NCBI RefSeq assembly: GCF_032191835.1
Contig: NC_083232.1
Span: 52,824,001 to 52,888,000 of the forward strand
Source of the DNA: Heteronotia binoei
Taxonomy: Eukaryota
Direction: 5' to 3'
Length of the DNA stretch: 64,000 nt
A program made the position numbers and the translations under genes. How positions within the stretch are numbered: position 1 is the first letter of the stretch; every line of letters begins with the position of its first letter. Under the pieces are notes generated by a model, which did not search any database, was not told the origin of the DNA, and was given only the letters and a program-made list of their open reading frames with translations. This document shows positions 5,272 through 62,589 of this stretch, piece by piece.

Positions 5272-6810
5272 TGTGGAATCCTTACCCCTAATAACAGAGT
5301 GGTGTTGTAAATTCCATGCTCATCATATCTGCTGCACTGAAGGACCTTCTCTCAGCACTGATTCGAATTGGAAGAATTTCCATATGTGGAAACTTTGCAC
5401 ATTGTAATCTGTGGATCATTTGATCAAACCAAGTTATTAACTTGTTGATATAATGGAACCTGGAGTTCTCCTGGAAGGGCAGCTGATCTGCATATTACAG
5501 AGATCAGTTCCCCTGGAAGAAATGGCAGCTTTGGTGGCTGTGCACTATGGTATTGCATCCCCATTGAGCTTCTTCCCCAAGCATTGCCCACATCTCCAGG
5601 AACTGGAGTTGGCAACCCTAGGAACCCTGTGACTACAATGCTCAAACCACACTACATAGCACTTTGAGGATTAGAATGTATATTGCTCTCTGGAAACTCA
5701 TCCTAAATAATTCCTTTCTTTTTTCTTTTGCACACTCTTAGAAAAGGTACATAATAGTGTCAAAGTACTTAAATGTCACTATAAACATCTTGCAGCCTAT
5801 TATTTTTCCTAACAAATAATTGGATTTTCCTTCTCTTTATATGTTGTATGTTCTCTTTACTATGTTGTAATCTCTTTGATTCTTGCATATAACTACAGAA
5901 AACTACAGAAAAACAGATGCAATTTGAAATGTATATTTTGCAGTGGTATCTGATGTTTTTGCTTTTATCATATTTAATTTGTATTGTACTTTTTGTAAAA
6001 ATAAGTGTGGATAAGTCATCTGTTTTTATGGATTTATTTAATATGTAGAATCTTTCTAGGAAAAAACAGCAGTTCAGAATATAAATACACATTGTTCATT
6101 ATAATCTTTTAAACCATTTGAAACAAATCACTGCTTTAACTTCCCTGAAAGCTTACTACGTGTTTTATTTAAAGTATATTTTTGTAGTGTATATAACTAA
6201 CTTTAATTTCAGTTTATTTATTAATTTGTCACTTTAGTATATCAAGAGATAGTTTATTTTTTTATGAGAGCTGCAATAACCATGACTTAGCATTAAGTTA
6301 ATGCAAAATTATTGTACATTGTCTAAAAAAATTAAAAGAATCTCTGCCTCTGATTCCTTTTGTTAAGTTGTGTCTTTCTTCCATCTTTAGTGACATGCTT
6401 GTCATGTTCTCTCTACTGAAAGGCCTTTATTTTATTTTTATTTTTTAAAAAAAGAATATTTGAGTGTGATTGCTATAATCCTGTTTATCATAATTTATGT
6501 GCAAATCCTGGTGAAGTCATGTTTTGTTTTCTTTAATAATGTGGTCTTTTAAAAGTCTTGGGTTGGATCCAAAGGTTGTGTTTCAGCAATGGTGAAGCAT
6601 TCTTCCAGTAAAAAAGAATGGAGAAAGAATCCCTCATTAGTAGGTCAGAACCTTTGGATCAGACACCTGAAATTTATCTTCAAGTAATTGAAATTCAGGA
6701 TTTGGCAGGTGTAAGTTGAAGGAAATAGTTGTATTGAAATAATTATACTGAAACTTAATTTGCTGTTCAACCTCTATCTATATTTATGGACTGGTAACTT
6801 CCATTTCAAT

Positions 6811-9780: not shown

Positions 9781-10959
9781 TCCAGAGGCAACCCCAACCT
9801 ATGCAGCTGCTTCCCCTACATCACCAGCGTGATGATGTCACCCAGAAGTGATGTCATCGTGACAGCACACACCAGCTGCTCTAGGCATTTACAGGAAAAC
9901 TCTATGGTTTTCCCAGATGCTCTAAGCTATTTGGGAGGGAAAATTCTATGGTACAATAGGTGCTATAGAGTTTCCCCCTCCCAAATGGCTAGAGCAGCTG
10001 GAAAAACCATTTCCCAGAAATGCCTAGAGCAGCTGCACATGGTACCGGGACGGAGGAGATTTGGCAACCCTAATCAGGCCCCTGGAGGGCTCCTAACAGG
10101 ACTACAAACAGCTCATTGACATCTGCTTCCTTCTCTCTCTTCCTACTGCATCACAGCTTGCTTTGCCAGGCTTGCTCAAAACAGGAGATACAGAGCAAAG
10201 ACTCTATTTTCTCCATTGGCTGACCAGCACATGAAACTACTTATGTACAAAAGCTTGCAATGCCCAGACATTTCATGTTTTCCCCTGGGTCTTAGGCTCA
10301 AAGCATTGACCATGAGATTTCTGTAATGAATGTCGATAAATCAAAAGTAGGTTTCCAACTTACAGACATGTACCTGAACAAAACCTGAAAATCATACTCA
10401 AGATTGCTGCAGCACATTGTCTCCAGATTTTGATGCAATAATTCAGAGCAAGAGGTGTCAGTTACCAGAAATATTGCAAGAGTGCTAATTGTTTAAGCAT
10501 ATTTTATATTAAATTTTTAATAAAAATCTTTAATTTTGTTTGTCTGTGTCCTTTATAAAGTTTATATCTTCACTACCTGGAATTACATTTTATGACACAC
10601 ATGACCCGGCCCAACAAGGTCTCATTTATGTCAGATCCAGGCCTCATAACAAATACGTTTGATACCTCTGCCTTAGGGAATGCAACCCCATCCAGAACAT
10701 AAGATATCTTAGTTCCTGGGTCCAACCTCCCCCTCCCCCCCCCCACACACACTGGTTGCACTTAATTTTGTCATTATTAAGTTTCAGTTTGCTAGCTCTC
10801 GTCTATTCCAAAAGTGCTCCCAGGCATGTGCTCAATGTTCCCACAGTCATCCTGGGATCTACTGGAAGTGAAAAACTGAGGTTTCCTGAATCTTCAGTGT
10901 ATGATTTAGAGATCTAGTATTATGGAAGAAGCTGGTCCACTGTCTCCACATCATGCATA

Positions 10960-15431: not shown

Positions 15432-18400
15432 TTACTTTCTCAACCTACTGTTTTATGTCATTTTGGTTAGTCATAATTAAAAGGCATTATGTAGCTTTTG
15501 GTTTGGGATTTTGCTTTGGATGAACGTGGGCACCTGTACCAGTGAATTTCATGGATGGGCAGAATACTCCTGACTTTTTCCTACATATTTTACCACATAC
15601 TGCTCAGGCACCTATGAGGCCAGCTGAAAGAGACACTGATATTTCTAAAAATAAAAGTCTCTTAATACATAAGAATGTAAAAAGAGTTACTGGATCAGAC
15701 CACAACATGTACTTCAGCATCCTATTTCAAACAGCGTACAACCAGTTGTCCTGGGAGACCAACAAGCAAGTTACAGAGTCTACTCAATATTACCTGCTAG
15801 CACTTGAATTCAGAGGTTGCTGCCTCTGACTATGGCATTTCTAGGGTTCCCGATTTTCCACTGCCACTCCTGCAGCAGGCAGGAGAAAAAATAATGTTAA
15901 AAAATAGCCATTGACAATAGAGTCTGTCCACTCTAGGAACCACCAGAAACTCAGTGGTTTTACTGTTTACTGCCTAAACTCAGGTGTTTACTGTTTACCG
16001 CCTAAACGCAGTGGTTTTGTTGCTTACGGCCTATGTCTGTAAGATTGTTTACTGTGCTGCTCCTGCTTTGTAATGTCTGTTTTTATGATATTATTTTAAC
16101 TCTGTGGTTTTATTGTTGTAAGCCGCCCTGATCCCATTTGCGGGATAGGGCGGGATATAAATCTAAAAGTTAAATTAAATAGAGATTCCAGTGATTTCTA
16201 TACATGTATGACATTCCTTCCAGGTTTTCCTGGAAGTGATGTAGGGTTGTCAAGTTGACTTACCTGGCTAGCAAGGAGACCAGAAATGATATTGGTCATT
16301 TTTGGACCTACTTTTGGTTTCAGGCCTACTTGCAGTTGGGGGTGACACTCTGGCTTTCTATGATAAATTCAGCTTCAAACCATAGAGTTTTGCCCAAAAA
16401 CTAGAGTGTTACTCCTCCCAACCAGAAATAAGCCTGAAACTGAAAGTAAGCCCAAAAAGGTCAGTCAAAAAGGCAGGGGTAGGGTTGACAAGTCTTACCT
16501 GGCTTTGGGTGGGGATTGGAAGTGATGTTACTGTGCTGGGCACATCACACATATAATGCTCCAGCAATCGGGTAAAAACTCTATGGCACCGGAGAGTTTT
16601 TTACCTGATTGCTAGAGCATCTCATGCCCAGCATGATAACATCACTTCCAGGTGATGTCATCACACCAGGCCTGTTGCAATGCACTGGAGCTCTTTGGGG
16701 ACAGGGTTCCTCCACTAGCCCATTATGGGGTGGGAGGTTGGAGGTCCCAAAATCAGGGGAACCCCTGTTCTTGGGGGGAACTTGGGAAGCCTAGTTGGGG
16801 ATGAAAACAGGGGCTCCCCTGCTTCCACTGAAGGGGAACCCCTGAATAATTAATGAATACCCCTATAATAACAAATGAAAATATGTTTTTGCCTTCAAAA
16901 GCAAAAAGGGTGTCTGATGCAATGTGTTAGAAGCAGACAGCCTTCAATCGGTGTGGATTTACAGATGTGTATTGGATAATAGAGAGGCCTCTTGGAGAAG
17001 CTTCTTGCTGAAGCTGATAACGCAGGGGGACAGAGGAATGGAAAAATACTGGAAGGAAAGCAAGGGGGTGGGGGAATGTTGAATCAGATAATTTGTAAGG
17101 GCCTGCCTGCTAGGCTTGCTTTGTGCTTAAAAAGACAGTCTGAAGATCGGGGAGGGGGGTTCAGTATTTTTGGAGCACTGATGCTCAACTGAACCCTGCT
17201 AACGGTACCAGTAGTAAAATACTTCGTTTCATACCAGTAAGTGTGTGGCTCCGTTATTTTCCTGCTACACCACCAGGGTGCTGGCTGTCAAGCTCTGTAA
17301 CTTTATCATACTGAAATTATAGAATACTAACCAAATGGACTCTCCATACTAACCCACAGCCTTTTGTTATACTGTAGCTAGCATGCATATCAAAGGGGAG
17401 ATGTTTGAAGTGCTAACTTTGTTTAGGTTGTAAAAGGAGCAAAGGAATGTGACCGTTAATAGATACCACCGCTGGCCAGCATCTTCCTAGAGGCAAAGAG
17501 ATAAGCAGAAGCTCTCGTGTGAAAGTTTGCACCTTCACTCCCTGTTGTTTTGAGAATAGTGTCTTTGTTTAGATATTGCTTTGATGTAGATTCCATAAGA
17601 CTAAGAGACACCCATTCCCAGGTATTAATCTCAACTTTTGTTTCCAGCTATGAGTTTCCAATAAAGTATTACATTGTCTCAATGAATACAGCCTTGAGTC
17701 TCCATCGCCTGACACTGGCAACTCTAAAGTTATGTCACACCATCTCTAACCTCATTGCACCCTGGACTGCTGTAAGTTTCCAAGTCATGCCTGGCAATTC
17801 TAAGTTCCCTTTAACTACCATGGCTTGTTGCCTTTGTTGGATCTGTCTAATACCCTTTTTAAGTCATCTATGCTCTTGGCCACCACTGTGTCCACTTGTA
17901 GTGAAGTCTACAATTTATTCATTCACTGAATAAAGAAATATATTTTATTAGTCTCAACAAAAATCTCACAGAACCACATGCAGTCTTTGGTATCCTCAGC
18001 AGACTGAACTTTCAATATGAAAACCCAAAACATGGGGTGAGAAAATTAAGAGGCCATGGTGGATAAAAATCCCAAATCTGCATTTGTAGTGTTAAAATGG
18101 AATACAAGAAATGTCTGAGGTCAAACTTCATTGGACAGTTTTGGATTCCAAGTAGGTTTTCAAGTGGCATGAAAGATAGTCCAGGGCATCGCTGATACTA
18201 AAACAGAGCTTCAGATCCCATGTTTAGCAGAAAGCAAAAGAAAAGGTGGTCAACATTATATTAGCAGCACTATACTCATTAATGTGTTGAACTAGATTTT
18301 TTTAAATTAACTGTGTTATAGTCCACTTTTTCACTGTGACTCTAAACAGATTACAAAGTTAGGAAAACAATACAAGTCATACCTAAATAGTGCAGTAACT

Positions 18401-25777: not shown

Positions 25778-26210
25778 GAAATACCTGAAAGATAAGTTAA
25801 AAAACAAAAGCAGGGCCAAAAGCTAAAACAAAATATGAATTAATTGTACATAAAAATACATGTATTGATTCTAAAGACATGTCTTTGTAATAAATTAGGG
25901 TTGCCAGGTCTGTGATGGAAAATATCTGGAGACTTTGGAAGTGGATCTGGGAGAGGGTGGGGTTTGGGGAGGGGAGGGGCCTCAGCATGGTACAATGCCA
26001 TGGAGTCCACCCTTCAAAGCAGCTATTCGCTCCAGGGGAGTTGATCTTTGCCAACTGAAGATCAGTTGTAAAAGCAGGAGATCTCCATGCCCCATCTGGA
26101 GGCTGGCAACCCTATAAATAAATACATGTATTTTAATGTACAATTAGTTCATATTTTGTTTTAGCTTTTGGTTCTGCTTTTGCCTTCTAACTTACCTTTC
26201 AGGTTCTTGA
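25778..26210. repeat. AT-rich inverted repeat (about 90-bp arms) around a nested MITE
   Basis: acctgaaagataagttaaaaaacaaaagcagggccaaaagctaaaacaaaatatgaattaattgtacataaaaatacatgtatt is mirrored at about 26120-26210. Confidence 0.8.
25896..26114. mobile_element. hAT MITE (TAGGGTTGCC TIR family); related copies at about 5480-5620, 9800-10072, 11445-11712, 16240-16790, 50030-50160
   Basis: TIRs tagggttgcca/tggcaacccta; shared internal ccctccaaagc..ttttctccagg.gaactgatc. Confidence 0.88.
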
Positions 26211-41233: not shown

Positions 41234-42004
41234 CAGACCTGTAGCCACGGGGAGCACAGCCCCTCCATTCAACCTCCCTTGTGGCCCCTCCATTGGGTGG
41301 GGCCCCACTTCCCTATGTAGGACCCCTCCATTGGAGGGCCTCTATGACCCGTGGGAAAGGGTGGGCAGCCAGAGGGAGCAGTAGAAGGGTGAGAGGCCGT
41401 ACAGGAGCCCCGGCAGGGCTTCCAACGGCCTCTTGGCAGGGAAGGGTGGCAGGGGGTCATGGGGGGTTGAGCGTCTCTCTCCAGGAGCCTTCATGCCCCA
41501 GAGGAACGGGTAGCATGAAGGGGTAGAGAGGGGAGGCGGCCACCGCCGCGGGTTACAAAGGGGTTACTATATGAGTGAGTAGGAGAGGGCAGGCGGGGGG
41601 AGAAGGCGCGGGTAGCCCGATGGGGCAGACCAGAGCAGGGTCCTCTCTGCAGCTAGCATTGTGGGGCGTTGCTGCTGCTGGTTGGCAGGCTGGAAAGGCC
41701 AGCTCAAGATGCTCTTGATGGCAAAGGAGCTGCTGAATTTAGAGCCGGAAGGTGGGGCGGACGATGAGGAGGGTTTCTGGCAGTAGTCAGGGGTTTCTGG
41801 TCGGTGCCGGAGCGCAGCGAGGCCAGGGCAGCAGCGGGAACCGGGGGTGGTTGGGCCTGGTTGGGCAGCATGCAGTGCTGGGGGGGCTCCAGAATCCTTG
41901 ACGGCCAGCAGCATGCCCCTTTTTCTCCCCCCCTTTGGCGCCCCCCTCACTCGAACTTTTATCGCTTGGGCCCCTCCATCCAAGATTTTCTGGCTACTGC
42001 CCTG
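41234..42004. mobile_element. Non-autonomous hAT element (Pack-hAT) carrying a FOXQ1 fragment, inserted in an old CR1
   Basis: 8-bp TSD gcttccac/acttccac (41226-41233, 42005-42012; 7/8). TIRs cagacctgtagccac and revcomp cagggcagtagccag (11/15). The flanking CR1 sequence rejoins across the insertion. Confidence 0.8.
41300..41925 (-). pseudogene. FOXQ1: Decayed fragment of FOXQ1 C-terminal (post-forkhead) coding region
   Basis: KFSSSFAIKSILSWPF at 41693-41740 (FOXQ1 eh1-like KFSSSFAIDSIL..PF). PFYCSLWLP at 41363-41389 (FOXQ1 LYCPLRLP), followed by GPH..PME. Contains stops and frameshifts; no forkhead domain. Confidence 0.8.
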
Positions 42005-50225: not shown

Positions 50226-50360
50226 NNNNNNNNNNNNNNNNNNNNNNNNNNNNNNNNNNNNNNNNNNNNNNNNNNNNNNNNNNNNNNNNNNNNNNNNNNN
50301 NNNNNNNNNNNNNNNNNNNNNNNNNNNNNNNNNNNNNNNNNNNNNNNNNNNNNNNNNNNN
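50226..50360. other. Assembly gap (135 N) in an ABCB5 intron
   Basis: Run of n. Exon phases on both sides join without needing a missing exon. Confidence 0.99.
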
Positions 50361-51882: not shown

Positions 51883-52049
51883 GTAAGTTCCCATACAGTT
51901 ATTATTTTGAGAAGTTATAACTTTATCTTGCTATAAAGGCAAATTTTGTTTTTGTCTTTCAGTGTATGATTACAATCACACTCCTTTTTTCAGTATACTA
52001 ATGTGTTCAACAGAATGCTGCTTATTTTAGCTGTTAATGTCTTCATCAG

Positions 52050-52241
52050 GTTTGCTTACTACTATGTTGGACTTGGTTGTGGTGTGTTGCTCCTCAGCTC
52101 CATTCAGGTCTGGGCCTTTTTGACTAGTGCTGCAAGACAAACAGCAAGGATACGTGATAAATTCTTTTTTGCTGTTCTTCACCAAGAGATGGCCTGGTTT
52201 GATACCATCCGCATTGGAACACTGAATACCAGACTTACTGA
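52050..52241 (+). CDS. ABCB5: ABCB5 coding exon 6 (TM2, ICL1)
   Basis: 192-bp exon, as in ABCB1. FAYYYVGLGCGVLLLSSIQVWAFLTSAARQTARIRDKFFFAVLHQEMAWFDTIRIGTLNTRLT. Confidence 0.97.
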
Positions 52242-53083
52242 GTAAGAAATTTCTATTCTGCTGTTGGGGATGGGGTATGGAAGGAAGTAACTGTCTTCTG
52301 TCTGGAGGATACCTAGCCAGATTTTGTGGGTCTATCTGCCAAATCCAGCTAGAGACTTGGAACCACATAAAAGGTGATTGCCACTCCTGTATGTCTAAAT
52401 AGTTGGTGAGCTGCATGCATTGTATGTGCTCTTTTCCTTCCTGATCTGCTAGAGATATGCATGTGGATCACTTTTGAAGTGGTAAAAATTCTGCCAAAAG
52501 AAAACAGAAGGGCTGCATCAATTACAGAGATTTTAGAAAATAGGGTCACTGATGGACACACTGAATTCTTGAAGGTCTTATTTGTCTCATTAAGTTCAAC
52601 AGAAAGCAAACTTATGCATATGTTGCCAGAGTTCTCTTCTTTTATAAAGAAAACAGTTGTGGGCTATCTCTTGTTTATGAAATCTGCCATTGGGTCTCAT
52701 GTACTGGTTCTATGGGAATGCCATATTGTTTGGGAAATTGTGGATATAGGAAGGGTTTATGAACTATAGAAAGAGAAAATTTCTCCCGCAACATAGAAGA
52801 ATGCATGCATGGATTCTTCCTTTTATTAAAAAAAAAAAAGGAAAATATTCACGTGAGATGAGGGTACCCCTATGTATGCTTTAGACCTCCAGTATTCATA
52901 GGAAATAGCTAGGTTGAGGCACACATCTGTAATCTGCAATGGTAATTATTTGGGATTAGGCTGATTTGGTGAGGCATAGTTCCAATGTCACTCTAGGTTC
53001 AAATGCCTCAATTTGTCTTTTTTTTTAACAATAACCAAAGTCATGGTGTCACCCAAATGATCCATATGCATATGTAAGTCACC

Positions 53084-54741
53084 TAGGGTTGCCAAGTCCA
53101 ATTAAAGAAAAATCTGGGGACTTTGGGGGCGGAGCCAGGAAACATTGGGGTGGAGCCAGGAACAAGGATGTGACAAGTATAATTGAACTCCAAGGGAGTT
53201 CTGGCCATCACATTTAAAGGGACAGCACGCCTTTTTAAATGCCTTTCTTCCATAGGAAATAATTAAGAATAGGGGCACCATCTTTTGGGGCTCATAGAAT
53301 TGGACCTTCTGGTCCAATTGTTTTGAAACTTGGGGTGTATTTTGGGGAGAGGCACTAGATGCTATACTAAAAATCTGGTGCCTCTACCTCAAAAAATAGC
53401 CCCCCCCAGAGCCCCCAATACCCACGGATCAATTCCCTATTATTCCCTATGGGAATCGTTCTCCATAGGGAATAATAGAGTGCCTAGTAGACATTTCCCT
53501 CCCCTCCCCCCCGCTTTCTGACGACCCTGGGGATTGGCAACCCTAGGTCCACCAGCGGGGCCAGGATAACAGAGGCTGTGGAAGAGAGGGCCATCAGTAG
53601 CTGTGAGTTGACATGGGCAAATGGAACCTCTGTAGATAGAGAGAGAGTACCCGCTGGAACACCAAACACCACGAAACCTAAGAAAACACACAGAACATTG
53701 CAGCCTTATCGCATGGCCCTAGCTCAGTTTACTAAGTGGGACTTACTTGGGGAGGCGCTGGGTTGCCAGCTCCAGGTCGGGAAACCCCTGAAGCTTTGGA
53801 GGCAGAGCTTGTTAAGGACACAGACCAGGGGGGGGGGGATGCAAGCCATGCCCTCGAGGGCGCCCACCCTCCTCCAAAGCTGCCGTCTTTTCCCGGTGGG
53901 GGCGGGGCTCCCTGCAGCCAGGAGCTCCGTGGCCATTCCAGGAGCTCTCCAGGCCTCACTTGGAGAAAGGTAGCCCTCCCGAGCGGGCCCCTGGCTGCGG
54001 GGAGGGTGTCTCCCAGGCCCGGAAGGAAAGGAGGGAGGCCGAGGTGCTTTGCCTGCGGGCTCCCCAGAAAGGCAGGCACTTGCTGGAGGGCTGGCCGGGC
54101 TGCGGTCGGTGGCGCTGGGGCTGCCCGCCTCCTTCTCCTCGGGGCCGTGCGCAGGCAGGGCAGGGCAGAGAGGGCCATGGGGCAAGGGCAGCAGTGCAGG
54201 GCCCGCCTGGTGGGAGCCCCGCCGCCTTACCCTCCTTGACGCCGGGCAGCTTGGACTGGTTGATGCCGATTTCGGCCATGGCGGCGCCCGCAGCTCCTCA
54301 CCTGGCGTCGGGGCTCCTCCGGAGCAAGGAAGGCTGCAAGTGAGGCAGCCGCTGCCTGTGCCCCGTCGCCCTCCTCGTGAGCAAGACGCCGCTGCAGCCG
54401 CGCCAGCTTCCCTCCCTCCCTCCGGGGACAGCCGGCGCTCCACCACCAGGGCGCGGAAGAGCCCCCAGCCAGCCGGGCTGAGGTGGGAAGGAAGCTGCGT
54501 GGCCGCCACCCAAGAGAAAAGGACTCCAAGAGGGAGCGCTGAGCTCCAGCCCACCCCGCTGGCGCGGCGCGAGACCTTGGTCGGCAGCCAGAACCCAGCC
54601 AGAGGCCTGCTCGCCCTCGGCTTGGCTCGGGCAGGTGGGAAGGGCCGCCATTTCCCCCCCGCTTTCCAGATGTTTGGGGAGCGGGGGGAGGAGGCTCCAA
54701 ATCGGGGGTCCCCCGCCCAGGCGGGGGATTTGGGAACCCTA
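53084..54741. mobile_element. Composite non-autonomous hAT element (Pack-hAT) carrying a CCDC50 fragment
   Basis: Perfect 8-bp TSD AAGTCACC (53076-53083, 54742-54749). Outer TIRs tagggttgccaagtc and revcomp tagggttcccaaatc match 13/15. Contains a complete MITE (53084-53545), an older MITE (53759-53977) and GC-rich non-repeat cargo. Confidence 0.9.
54231..54279 (-). pseudogene. CCDC50: Captured first coding exon of CCDC50 (with 5' flank and intron 1)
   Basis: Minus strand gccgccATGG Kozak, then MAEIGINQSKLPGVKE+G|gtaagg (49 coding bp). Recalled human CCDC50 begins MAEVSIDQSKLPGVKE(V) with the same phase-1 intron. No downstream CCDC50 exons are seen. Confidence 0.85.
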
Positions 54742-55975
54742 AAGTCACCCACAGGAGGGTCATCCTTTAACATGTCAAGAGCCTATATACAGGTGCAGTC
54801 AGGGCAATTATTATTGGGACCTTCTGCCAGGTATACACCAGCATCCAATATTTAATCCAATGCCTTATATGAGTATGCAGGTTCTTAGAAATTAAGAAAA
54901 TGGATAGCAAAGGAAATTAGCAAACAGCATACAAAAACACACAGAGATTAAATAAAAGTTCTGTAAATCCTAGCTTTTACTAAATCCTAGCCTTAAAAAG
55001 TTACTAATATAAAGGAAGGATAAGGTGGTGGGATACAAAGGAAGAAAACGTATGAATCTATCCACTGAGTGGAATCCAAGAAGGTTTGTTGGAATAAATT
55101 GGTGAGAGCAGGGTAGGAAAGCAGAGCACAGTCTTTGGGGGTTGCCTGTCTTGGATAGCAGGGCCAAAGCAGAGTCATGCACACATTTCCACTTTGCACT
55201 CCCAAATGAGGGTTTGGAGCTAGTTGCAGGAATCTGGTATTAAGATGGGACCCAGCAGCTAGAACAAAATGCTGGGCATTCTCAGGGCTTCCTTTATATT
55301 ACTTTAGAATGATAGGAGATTAAGTCGATGTGAGTGAATATGTCCATTTCCAAGCAAATTTCCAGTTACTTTTCTTTCTCCCTTTGAAATAGAGGATTGG
55401 CTTCATTGCTCTGAGATCTCCCTTCTTCCTCTCAGATTAAAGAGATACATACTTTTCTAATATTCCAAAGCTTGGGTAAGGTCAAATAAATAAATAAATA
55501 AAAAGAATTTGTAGGCCTTCTGGAAGATCTATGGGGGGCCTCCCTTTGAAGCAGGGGCAGCCCAGCCTGAGTGAGTCATGGAAAGCGTATTCGGGCATGG
55601 GGAGGTGGAGGGAGGCAGGTGGGGGAAGGTGGGTGCAGGGAGGTGGTGGGTGCAGTGAGAGAGGGTGCCTCATGGCACTCCTAGGCCAAGTGGCACCCAA
55701 GGCGGCCACCTACTTGGCCTACTCCCATGCGCCAGCCCTGTGTGTTGTGTTTTCATGCCACTGTTCTCTTCTGACTTGCTGATAAGTCCCTGTGGCTGAT
55801 TCTCACTCTCTGTGTATAAAGAGAATGGATCTGTTGCTTCCATCTCAATTTTTGAATCCCAGGATGTCTCCAGAAGGAAAAGGAAAAAAGAAACTGGGTT
55901 GGTGGGTGAGGCGTTCCTCCAGTAATAATCAGATAATAGAATTTGTGCATGAAATATGACACATTTATTGTGCCT

Positions 55976-56275: not shown

Positions 56276-56557
56276 GCTTCAGTAAATGTGATGAGATTCT
56301 CCAAAGAAAGATAATGTTCGTATAGTTATGTATTGTAAGAATAATTATTATGAAACCTGAAGAAAATGGGATGAAATACATTAGACTTGAGAGACTTATG
56401 AGACTAATTTTGTGTCCACATAAACCCCCCCCCCTACAATGGCACCTAGTTTTTTGGGTCACTGCGTGACAGAGTGTCGGACTGGATGGGCCACTAGCCT
56501 AATCCAACATAGCTTCTCTTATGTTCTTATCCATCATTTTTTCTCCTTTGATTGCAG

Positions 56558-56729
56558 TGATATTAATACGATTCAAGAAGGCATTGGAGACAAGATCAGT
56601 TTAATAGTCCAGTTTTCTTCGACTTTTGTGGCGGGGATTATCATAGGATTTGTGCATGGATGGAAGCTTACTCTTGTGATTTTAGCTGTTAGCCCTCTTA
56701 TTGCTGCATCTGGGGCTGTGTGGTCGTAT
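56558..56729 (+). CDS. ABCB5: ABCB5 coding exon 7 (TM3-TM4)
   Basis: 172-bp exon. DINTIQEGIGDKISLIVQFSSTFVAGIIIGFVHGWKLTLVILAVSPLIAASGAVWSY. Confidence 0.97.
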
Positions 56730-57105
56730 GTAAGTTGATGAAGCTACTAGTGATAATTCATTAAGTTACACCATTTAAATCCCATGTGCTGTGTTTTCTT
56801 TTAAGAGAAAGTAATATCATTTTTTAGCATATGCATTTTTAAAGAGAATGTTTAGCCAGTCATTTTACTAAAATCCATGTCATCACTTTTGGTATAGAAA
56901 GCTAATCAGGAGATGGTTACTTCTCTGCACAGAGAATTACATGTGCAGCCAAATTCATATGTGTGAAAATGGGGCTTATGCAGTGCTAGAATTAAGGCAT
57001 ATCACCAAAAGATGTTTCTGATTTCTTATCATACACAGTAACTTTATTCATATAAGGGGAATTAACAGTCTCTAAACTTTGGTGATTTTTCTTTACATTT
57101 TCTAG

Positions 57106-61995: not shown

Positions 61996-62589
61996 GTAAG
62001 TTTTTTCTTTCTTTCATCTTTCTGGAGGGGCAGTTGTTTGTGTGCAGGGAGTGTAATGGTCCTACTCTGTGTAACAAAAGGGAAAGTGCTGATAGTTTAA
62101 ATGACCAATTTGTTTCAAGATATATTCCTTTCAAATATTGTTGGTGATTACAAATAAATATTTGCATCTGGTTAAGAATATATAATGTTCTGAATGTCTT
62201 ATATGTTGAGTCAAAACTTTGGTCTATCAAGATCAGTATTGTTTACTCTGACTGGCAACTGCTCTCCAGGATCTGAGGTCTTTTACATTGCCTCCTGATT
62301 TAGTCTTTTAACTGGAAATGCCAGGGATTGCACCTGGGACCTTCTGGAGGCAAAACAGATGCTCCGCCACTGAACTACAGCACCCCTGATAAAATGTGGT
62401 GGTTACTTCTGTCCATTTTAGGGTGTCATTGATTACCCAAGCTGGCTTGGCTTGGAGAAGTGATTTAAAGAAACAAATGCTTTCTCCAAGCTGGCTGATA
62501 GGGCAGTGGGGGCTTCAAGAGCCACACAATATGTGTGAAAGAGCCACATGTGACTCCCGAGCCACAGTTTGGTCACCACTGTGTTTAAA

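Follow-up and report, generated by a model that had tools for sequence, protein, structure and literature searches.

The stretch of DNA analysed here, 64,000 nucleotides of Heteronotia binoei contig NC_083232.1 (positions 52,824,001 to 52,888,000; hereafter the window), contains exons of an ABC-transporter gene, one intron of which is occupied by a 1,658-bp unit (53084-54741). The unit is bounded like a transposable element (TE) of the hAT superfamily and encloses the first exon of CCDC50, together with adjacent non-coding DNA and a CpG island. An initial annotation of this DNA had proposed that the 5' region of CCDC50 reached this intron either with flanking hAT ends, as a composite or macro-transposon, or by gap filling, and the present analysis follows up that proposal.

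The exons on either side of the unit lie on the plus strand. The upstream exon (52042-52239, within a stop-free frame at 51970-52242) matches positions 40-105 of the Pfam ABC_membrane profile and the downstream exon (56556-56726, stop-free frame 56424-56735) positions 106-162, i.e. the two are consecutive in the profile. Further ABC-transporter exons were found downstream at 58.1, 60.9 and 61.8 kb. This confirmed that, as initially annotated, the insertion lies in an ABC-transporter intron: the host is an ABCB-type gene with an ABC_membrane domain, located on the plus strand, and the CCDC50 fragment is antisense to it. This gene may be ABCB5, the name given in the initial annotation, or a paralogue of the ABCB group.

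Ends and internal repeats of the unit

Both tips of the unit are directly abutted by an 8-bp target site duplication (TSD), AAGTCACC, whose left (53076-53083) and right (54742-54749) copies are identical at 8/8 positions. Comparison of the left terminal inverted repeat (TIR), TAGGGTTGCCAAGTCC, with the reverse complement of the right end, TAGGGTTCCCAAATCC, gave 13/15 matching positions (14/16 when one further position was included), and the perfect TSD and the 13/15 TIRs of the initial annotation were therefore reproduced. Both ends start with TAGGGTTGCCAA and conform to the short YARNG-type TIR of hAT elements. An 8-bp duplication combined with TAGGG-type TIRs is the pattern of the hAT superfamily, the ends of Ac being CAGGG/TAGGG. 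By its TSD length and TIR type, 53084-54741 corresponds to a non-autonomous element of this superfamily.

The starting pattern of these TIRs occurs 19 times in the window, as compared with 8.1 ± 2.9 expected occurrences. When all pairings of the TIR motif not more than 4 kb apart were listed (n=9), only one of them, 53084/54741, had flanks matching at 8/8 positions; the chance of such identity is 1.5e-5 per pair and approximately 1.4e-4 over all 9 pairings. The base composition changes abruptly exactly at the TSDs, from a GC content of 0.37-0.40 and a CpG observed-to-expected ratio (o/e) of 0.05-0.12 outside the unit to a GC content of about 0.70 inside its right end. The outer TSD shows either a joint integration of the two outer tips or an earlier integration of a single element at this site.

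The left part of the unit is a complete hAT-type miniature inverted-repeat transposable element (MITE) of 462 bp, designated MITE A (53084-53545, plus strand; GC 0.47, CpG o/e 0.23), whose own TIRs match at 12/12 positions. Its left TIR (53084-53099) also forms the left tip of the 1,658-bp unit, while its right TIR (53534-53545) is intact, is kept inside the unit and is directly followed by non-repeat DNA. As had been stated in the initial annotation, the right flank of this MITE (GGTCCACC) is unlike the outer TSD, with which it agrees at only 4/8 positions. Since the TSD at the outer TIRs is perfect and the inner flank does not match it, the outer ends define one insertion. Three nucleotides beyond the tips of MITE A are also complementary (ACC/TAGGG...CCCTA/GGT; 53081-53095 / 53534-53548; 15/15 positions in total), which is probably due to chance (1 in 64), because the outer right flank of the unit departs from this pattern.

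The right TIR of the unit (54726-54741) belongs to a 97-bp segment (approximately 54645-54741, plus strand) that we identified as the right-end remnant of a second MITE. The remnant aligns to the right end of a MITE located elsewhere in the window (16480-16793) with a score of 58, as compared with 23.7 ± 4.1 (maximum 40) for shuffled sequences, and has an exact 14-mer, TCCCCCCCGCTTTC, as well as the terminal 17 nt in common with the right subterminus of MITE A. The right-end sequence is thus present twice in the unit (53505-53545 and 54653-54741), which indicates that two separate element ends were involved. For the same reason, a simple insertion of filler DNA into one MITE was rejected. The right end of the remnant differs from that of MITE A by an indel of approximately 48 nt, and its CpG o/e (0.53) is similar to that of the CpG island described below and unlike that of the local intron and of MITE A. 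MITE A and the 97-bp right end enclose an interior of non-TE DNA, as in elements of the Pack-TIR type. Moreover, an element's own terminus is kept internally and is followed by host DNA up to a second, properly inverted terminus, which is the arrangement expected of end bypass.

A further MITE of 219 bp, old and GC-enriched, was identified within the presumed intron fragment carried by the unit (53758-53977, plus strand). We used as a reference the canonical 219-bp MITE at 25896-26114, to which it aligns over the full length, and found it to be far GC-richer (GC 0.65) than this copy. The presence of a second, older and GC-rich MITE, noted in the initial annotation, was thereby confirmed. The canonical copy has TIRs of the same family and is located in AT-rich DNA; its flanks (TAATAAAT / TAAATAAA) form an ambiguous TSD of low complexity.

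The presumed CCDC50 cargo

Read on the minus strand, the interior of the unit contains an ATG in the context gccgccATG(G), which opens 16 codons encoding MAEIGINQSKLPGVKE, followed by one G and the splice donor GTAAGG (GT at 54230-54229). The coding part of the exon comprises 49 nt (54279-54231) and ends one base into a codon that the intron splits (phase 1). The initial annotation had given this reading as gccgccATG-MAEIGINQSKLPGVKE-G/gtaagg, and we obtained it again at 54279-54229.

To identify the exon, a 70-aa N-terminus of human CCDC50 was used as a probe of a set of 5.8 billion proteins, and the returned proteins alone were taken as evidence. The probe returned 18 fragments, 18/18 of which contained the Pfam domain PF15295 (CCDC50_N). 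The start of the quail fragment (MAEIGIDQSKLPGVKE) agrees with the unit peptide at 15/16 residues and that of the tiger snake fragment (MAEVGIDRSKLPGVKEV) at 13/16. When the 18 fragments were compared with the window using tblastn, the sole match was 54279-54232 (E = 8e-5, obtained with the snake fragment). At the nucleotide level, exon 1 is 85% identical to the snake and 88% identical to the quail sequence over 65-66 nt, and in the native loci of both species a phase-1 donor follows the 49 coding bases at the same position (AAGGAGG/gtaagg in the window, AAGGAAG/gtgagg in the snake, AAGGAAG/gtacgg in the quail), in accordance with the phase-1 intron that had been postulated initially. The agreement with two PF15295-positive proteins identifies the unit peptide as that of CCDC50 exon 1, as originally proposed.

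In the native tiger snake CCDC50 gene, exon 2 is located 11.3 kb downstream of exon 1. In contrast, the same tblastn comparison revealed no sequence resembling CCDC50 exon 2 (VCRDFAV...) on either strand of the whole window, including the approximately 53-54 kb that lie downstream of the unit on the minus strand (intron 1 of the snake spans 11 kb). The occurrence of the other CCDC50 exons downstream on the minus strand had been named in the initial annotation as an observation that would speak for a real nested gene; none was detected within the 64 kb, which rules out a nested complete gene within 54 kb. Since intron sequence was retained and exon 1 is not followed by exon 2, a retrocopy was ruled out, and the earlier conclusion that the capture took place at the DNA level was upheld on the same grounds.

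Several additional searches gave no matches. A 22-aa exon-1 peptide, which is too short for the PF15295 model, retrieved 0 Pfam families at E <= 10, and a 30-aa exon-1 query, likewise too short, gave 0 matches at E <= 0.001 among 1.84 billion representative proteins. Stop-free frames of the cargo (113 aa and 352 aa) matched nothing in the set of 5.8 billion proteins, no exact product of a 107-aa open reading frame of the cargo was found on record, and a degenerate exon-1 pattern gave 0 matches in metagenome contigs.

The native quail gene used in the above comparisons is located on contig MCFN01000188.1 (6001-19955; 24466 onwards), where CCDC50 is annotated as two partial products of 114 aa and 111 aa, both with the CCDC50_N domain. 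The first of these runs through intronic sequence past exon 1, which is an annotation artefact of this contig.

The DNA on both sides of the exon is contiguous with it, and on this basis approximately 0.69 kb of the cargo is presumed to represent CCDC50 intron 1 (its first 685 bp, 53546-54230, minus strand, from the GTAAGG at 54230 onwards) and approximately 0.37 kb the CCDC50 5' untranslated region (5'UTR) and core promoter (54280-54644, minus strand; GC 0.72, CpG o/e 0.69). By the thresholds of Gardiner-Garden and Frommer (>=200 bp, GC >=0.5, o/e >=0.6), a CpG island extends over 761 bp (53976-54736; GC 0.72, o/e 0.60), and its core (54100-54600) reaches a GC content of 0.725 and an o/e of 0.654. 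A comparable CpG island is present in the 5' region of native snake CCDC50. The old MITE gave a weak match elsewhere in the window, but the interior of the unit (53546-54644; 1,099 bp) otherwise has no second copy there, and no parental copy of the cargo was detected in these 64 kb. Alignment of the non-coding cargo with the snake and quail loci extended only over exon 1 and a few bases; this comparison has no power, since the snake and quail loci themselves share only approximately 105 bp.

Origin of the unit

We consider it probable that the unit arose by composite transposition, in which the left end of MITE A and the right-end remnant of the second MITE moved together with the CCDC50 5' region lying between them (end bypass or transduction, termed macrotransposition for Ac/Ds). 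At the donor locus, a young 462-bp MITE would have resided in CCDC50 intron 1, and a related but older MITE would have had its right end, in the same orientation, just upstream of the promoter. Transposase would then have paired the left end of the first MITE with the right end of the second, bypassing the first MITE's own right end. The intervening 1.1 kb would have moved with these ends, namely the promoter with its CpG island, the 5'UTR, the coding part of exon 1 (49 bases) and its splice donor, and approximately 0.69 kb of intron 1 including the old MITE. One transposition event into the ABC-transporter intron would have created the AAGTCACC duplication.

The architecture of the unit leans towards this composite origin rather than towards gap filling. 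An intact inner right TIR, directly followed by non-repeat DNA and with a flank unlike the TSD, is the signature of a bypassed end. The remnant and the old MITE are, similarly to the island, rich in GC and CpG and differ in this respect from the local intron and from MITE A, which suggests that they arrived with the cargo; judging by their composition, both appear to have resided in the CCDC50 5' region for a long time. Furthermore, a second unit in the window (16242-17726) repeats the architecture (TIRs of the same family, a TSD matching at 7/8 positions and a complete MITE inside), which indicates that such an arrangement recurs. The use of ends of two nearby hAT elements of the Ac/Ds type in alternative transposition is established in maize (PMC4270019, PMC9910405), and work cited in PMC8277862 has established end bypass for P elements.

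Several points weigh against composite transposition. Both the structure of the donor locus and the mobilisation in a single step are inferred. The recognisable part of the second MITE amounts to no more than about 100 bp, and no autonomous hAT transposase was seen within the 64-kb window. Ectopic repair could also produce the final structure, provided that both MITE pieces are present at the donor, and in the 100 animal genomes surveyed by Tan et al. (2021, Nat Commun; PMC8277862) most of the single-copy Pack-TIRs were attributed to transposition-independent gap filling. In that survey, a unique parental copy with an identity of >=90% and 80-120% of the length was required, with no TEs within 100 bp of it (a control against segmental duplication). 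A composite origin predicts the contrary for the present unit, namely a donor with MITEs at both breakpoints.

Gap filling, the main published route by which single-copy Pack-TIRs arise in animals (PMC8277862), is the main alternative, although we regard it as less likely for this unit than composite transposition. A lone MITE would have inserted first, generating the TSD, and the repair of a later break within it would have been templated by a homologous MITE lying in intron 1 of CCDC50; synthesis would have run through exon 1 and the promoter before re-annealing to the right part of the local MITE at TCCCCCCCGCTTTC, with no composite transposition. It is in keeping with this route that an exact 14-nt direct repeat (53505-53518 / 54653-54666) encloses the extra 1,148 bp, whose deletion leaves a plausible MITE of approximately 510 bp. 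However, two events are required instead of one, and the donor must already hold MITE sequence on both sides of the copied segment, unless the 14-nt match is due to chance. The CpG content of the remnant is island-like, unlike that of the local intron and of MITE A, and published cases favour donors less than 15 kb away (PMC8277862), whereas the 64-kb window contains no parental copy. Another candidate, in which MITE A was nested into an older Pack element, was rejected, since the flanks of MITE A match at only 4/8 positions and its left TIR is at the same time the left tip of the unit.

That the unit is an assembly chimera, i.e. a plain MITE insertion misjoined through MITE repeats to reads of the CCDC50 locus and back, seems very unlikely. 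Both junctions do carry repeats and a probable assembly gap (50226-50360) lies 2.7 kb away, but two precise switches would be needed within repeat homology of no more than 100 bp, the right end of the unit is not interchangeable with that of MITE A owing to the indel of approximately 48 nt, and no run of N occurs within or beside the unit. Still more improbable, to the point of being negligible, is a genuine local first exon with its promoter (from native CCDC50, from a paralogue or from a nested gene), flanked by two unrelated MITE ends through coincidence. The ATG, its Kozak context, the splice donor and the CpG island are all intact, in keeping with this reading; nevertheless, the 8/8 identity of the flanks at both TIR tips has a chance of only about 1e-4, and no exon 2 follows within the approximately 53 kb downstream on the minus strand, compared with a snake intron 1 of 11 kb. 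The neighbouring exons, in addition, are those of an ABC transporter on the opposite strand, whereas the 25-26 kb examined around the native snake and quail CCDC50 genes contain no ABC exons.

Other elements of the window were also recorded. The TIRs of the 1,485-bp unit at 16242-17726 (TAGGGTTGTCAAG... / ...CTGGCAACTCTA) belong to the same family as those of 53084-54741, and its 7/8 TSD (AAGTGATG / AAGTTATG) starts with AAGT, as does that of the CCDC50 unit. It contains a complete 314-bp MITE (16480-16793) near its left end and approximately 0.9 kb of non-repeat, AT-rich DNA. Two more right ends of this TIR family (...TTGGCAACCCTA; 5561-5620 and 10013-10072), with no matching left end or TSD within 4 kb, are probably truncated or diverged copies. 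A GC-rich unit of 771 bp (41234-42004) has TIRs of a different type (CAGACCTGTAGCCA / CAGGGCAGTAGCCA) and a 7/8 TSD (GCTTCCAC / ACTTCCAC); a 151-aa frame on its minus strand has weak look-alikes in a Forkhead cluster, with a score of 0.76 that is below the useful range and provides a lead, not evidence. Within the ABC-transporter gene, a full-length Rfam match to transfer RNA (tRNA) was found in an intron (62313-62384, minus strand; 38.3 bits), which could be a tRNA gene or the head of a tRNA-derived short interspersed element. An upstream intron of the same gene contains a run of 135 N (50226-50360), which is either an assembly gap or a masked stretch, 2.7 kb from the CCDC50 unit.

Significance and comparison with known systems

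The capture of host DNA by cut-and-paste transposons has been much studied in plants and is sparsely documented in vertebrates. The unit described here is a clean example of a promoter module (CpG island, 5'UTR, start codon and splice donor) moved at the DNA level into an intron of another gene. Such modules are raw material for new transcripts, antisense regulation and exon shuffling. Taken by itself, it serves mainly as an illustration.

Capture by Pack-hAT elements in vertebrates has already been published: the survey of Tan et al. (PMC8277862) identified 370 Pack-TIRs in 100 animal genomes, including 208 of the hAT superfamily. Multicopy examples come from a frog and an alligator, and a hAT element of Xenopus tropicalis, Pack-hAT-N8_XT, carries a fragment of the CAPSL 5'UTR. 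The words lizard, reptile, anole and Anolis are absent from the main text of that paper. Its pipeline dropped parental copies with TE flanks, and the authors state that cases of end bypass would be missed; this one broad survey of animals is thus blind by design to end-bypass and composite cases. What is less documented in the present unit is the retained inner TIR and the complete module of promoter, exon 1 and splice donor.

A broader conjecture, which we regard as unlikely, is that the genome has, or until recently had, a hAT MITE system that repeatedly moves CpG-island promoters and first exons by pairing the ends of neighbouring MITEs, which would accumulate at the 5' ends of genes, at a rate far above the approximately 4 Pack-TIRs per genome known from the animal survey, and that the copy at 53084-54741 acts as an antisense or bidirectional promoter in the ABC-transporter gene. 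If this were true, modules composed of a promoter, exon 1 and a splice donor would be scattered ready-made into other genes. If captures were truly frequent, the number of Pack-type elements in this genome would far exceed that of every animal surveyed, and the species would offer a natural system for studying how captures arise.

The unit resembles the Pack-hAT elements of PMC8277862 in that hAT TIRs and a TSD surround host gene DNA, the cargo is the GC-rich 5' end of a gene, the capture took place at the DNA level with intron sequence kept, and the insertion site is within another gene, so that it may give rise to chimeric or antisense transcripts. It differs in keeping a complete inner TIR, and in that the cargo lies beside a whole MITE instead of replacing the interior of a TE. 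The macrotransposons and composite elements of maize Ac/Ds (PMC4270019, PMC9910405, bioRxiv 10.1101/2020.08.10.245175) are likewise hAT elements with an 8-bp TSD that can place regulatory DNA beside other genes. However, those elements involve autonomous Ac or large fractured copies of it and were caught genetically, whereas the ends of the CCDC50 unit are those of short vertebrate MITEs and the event is deduced from its end product.

Plant Pack-MULEs and other Pack-TYPE elements (PMC5861414, PMC8903248) are also non-autonomous TIR elements carrying gene fragments, with a preference for GC-rich 5' ends, and are often transcribed. In contrast to the present unit, they belong to the Mutator and CACTA superfamilies, generate a 9-bp or 3-bp TSD, are usually multicopy and retain no internal TIR. 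A further parallel is the end bypass or transduction of Drosophila P elements, in which, as cited in PMC8277862, an element's own end is skipped in favour of a downstream sequence acting as the second end, and adjoining host DNA moves with the element. According to the same citation, those events were seen after artificial activation of transposase; the surrogate end of the CCDC50 unit differs from theirs in being a genuine MITE end and not a chance look-alike.

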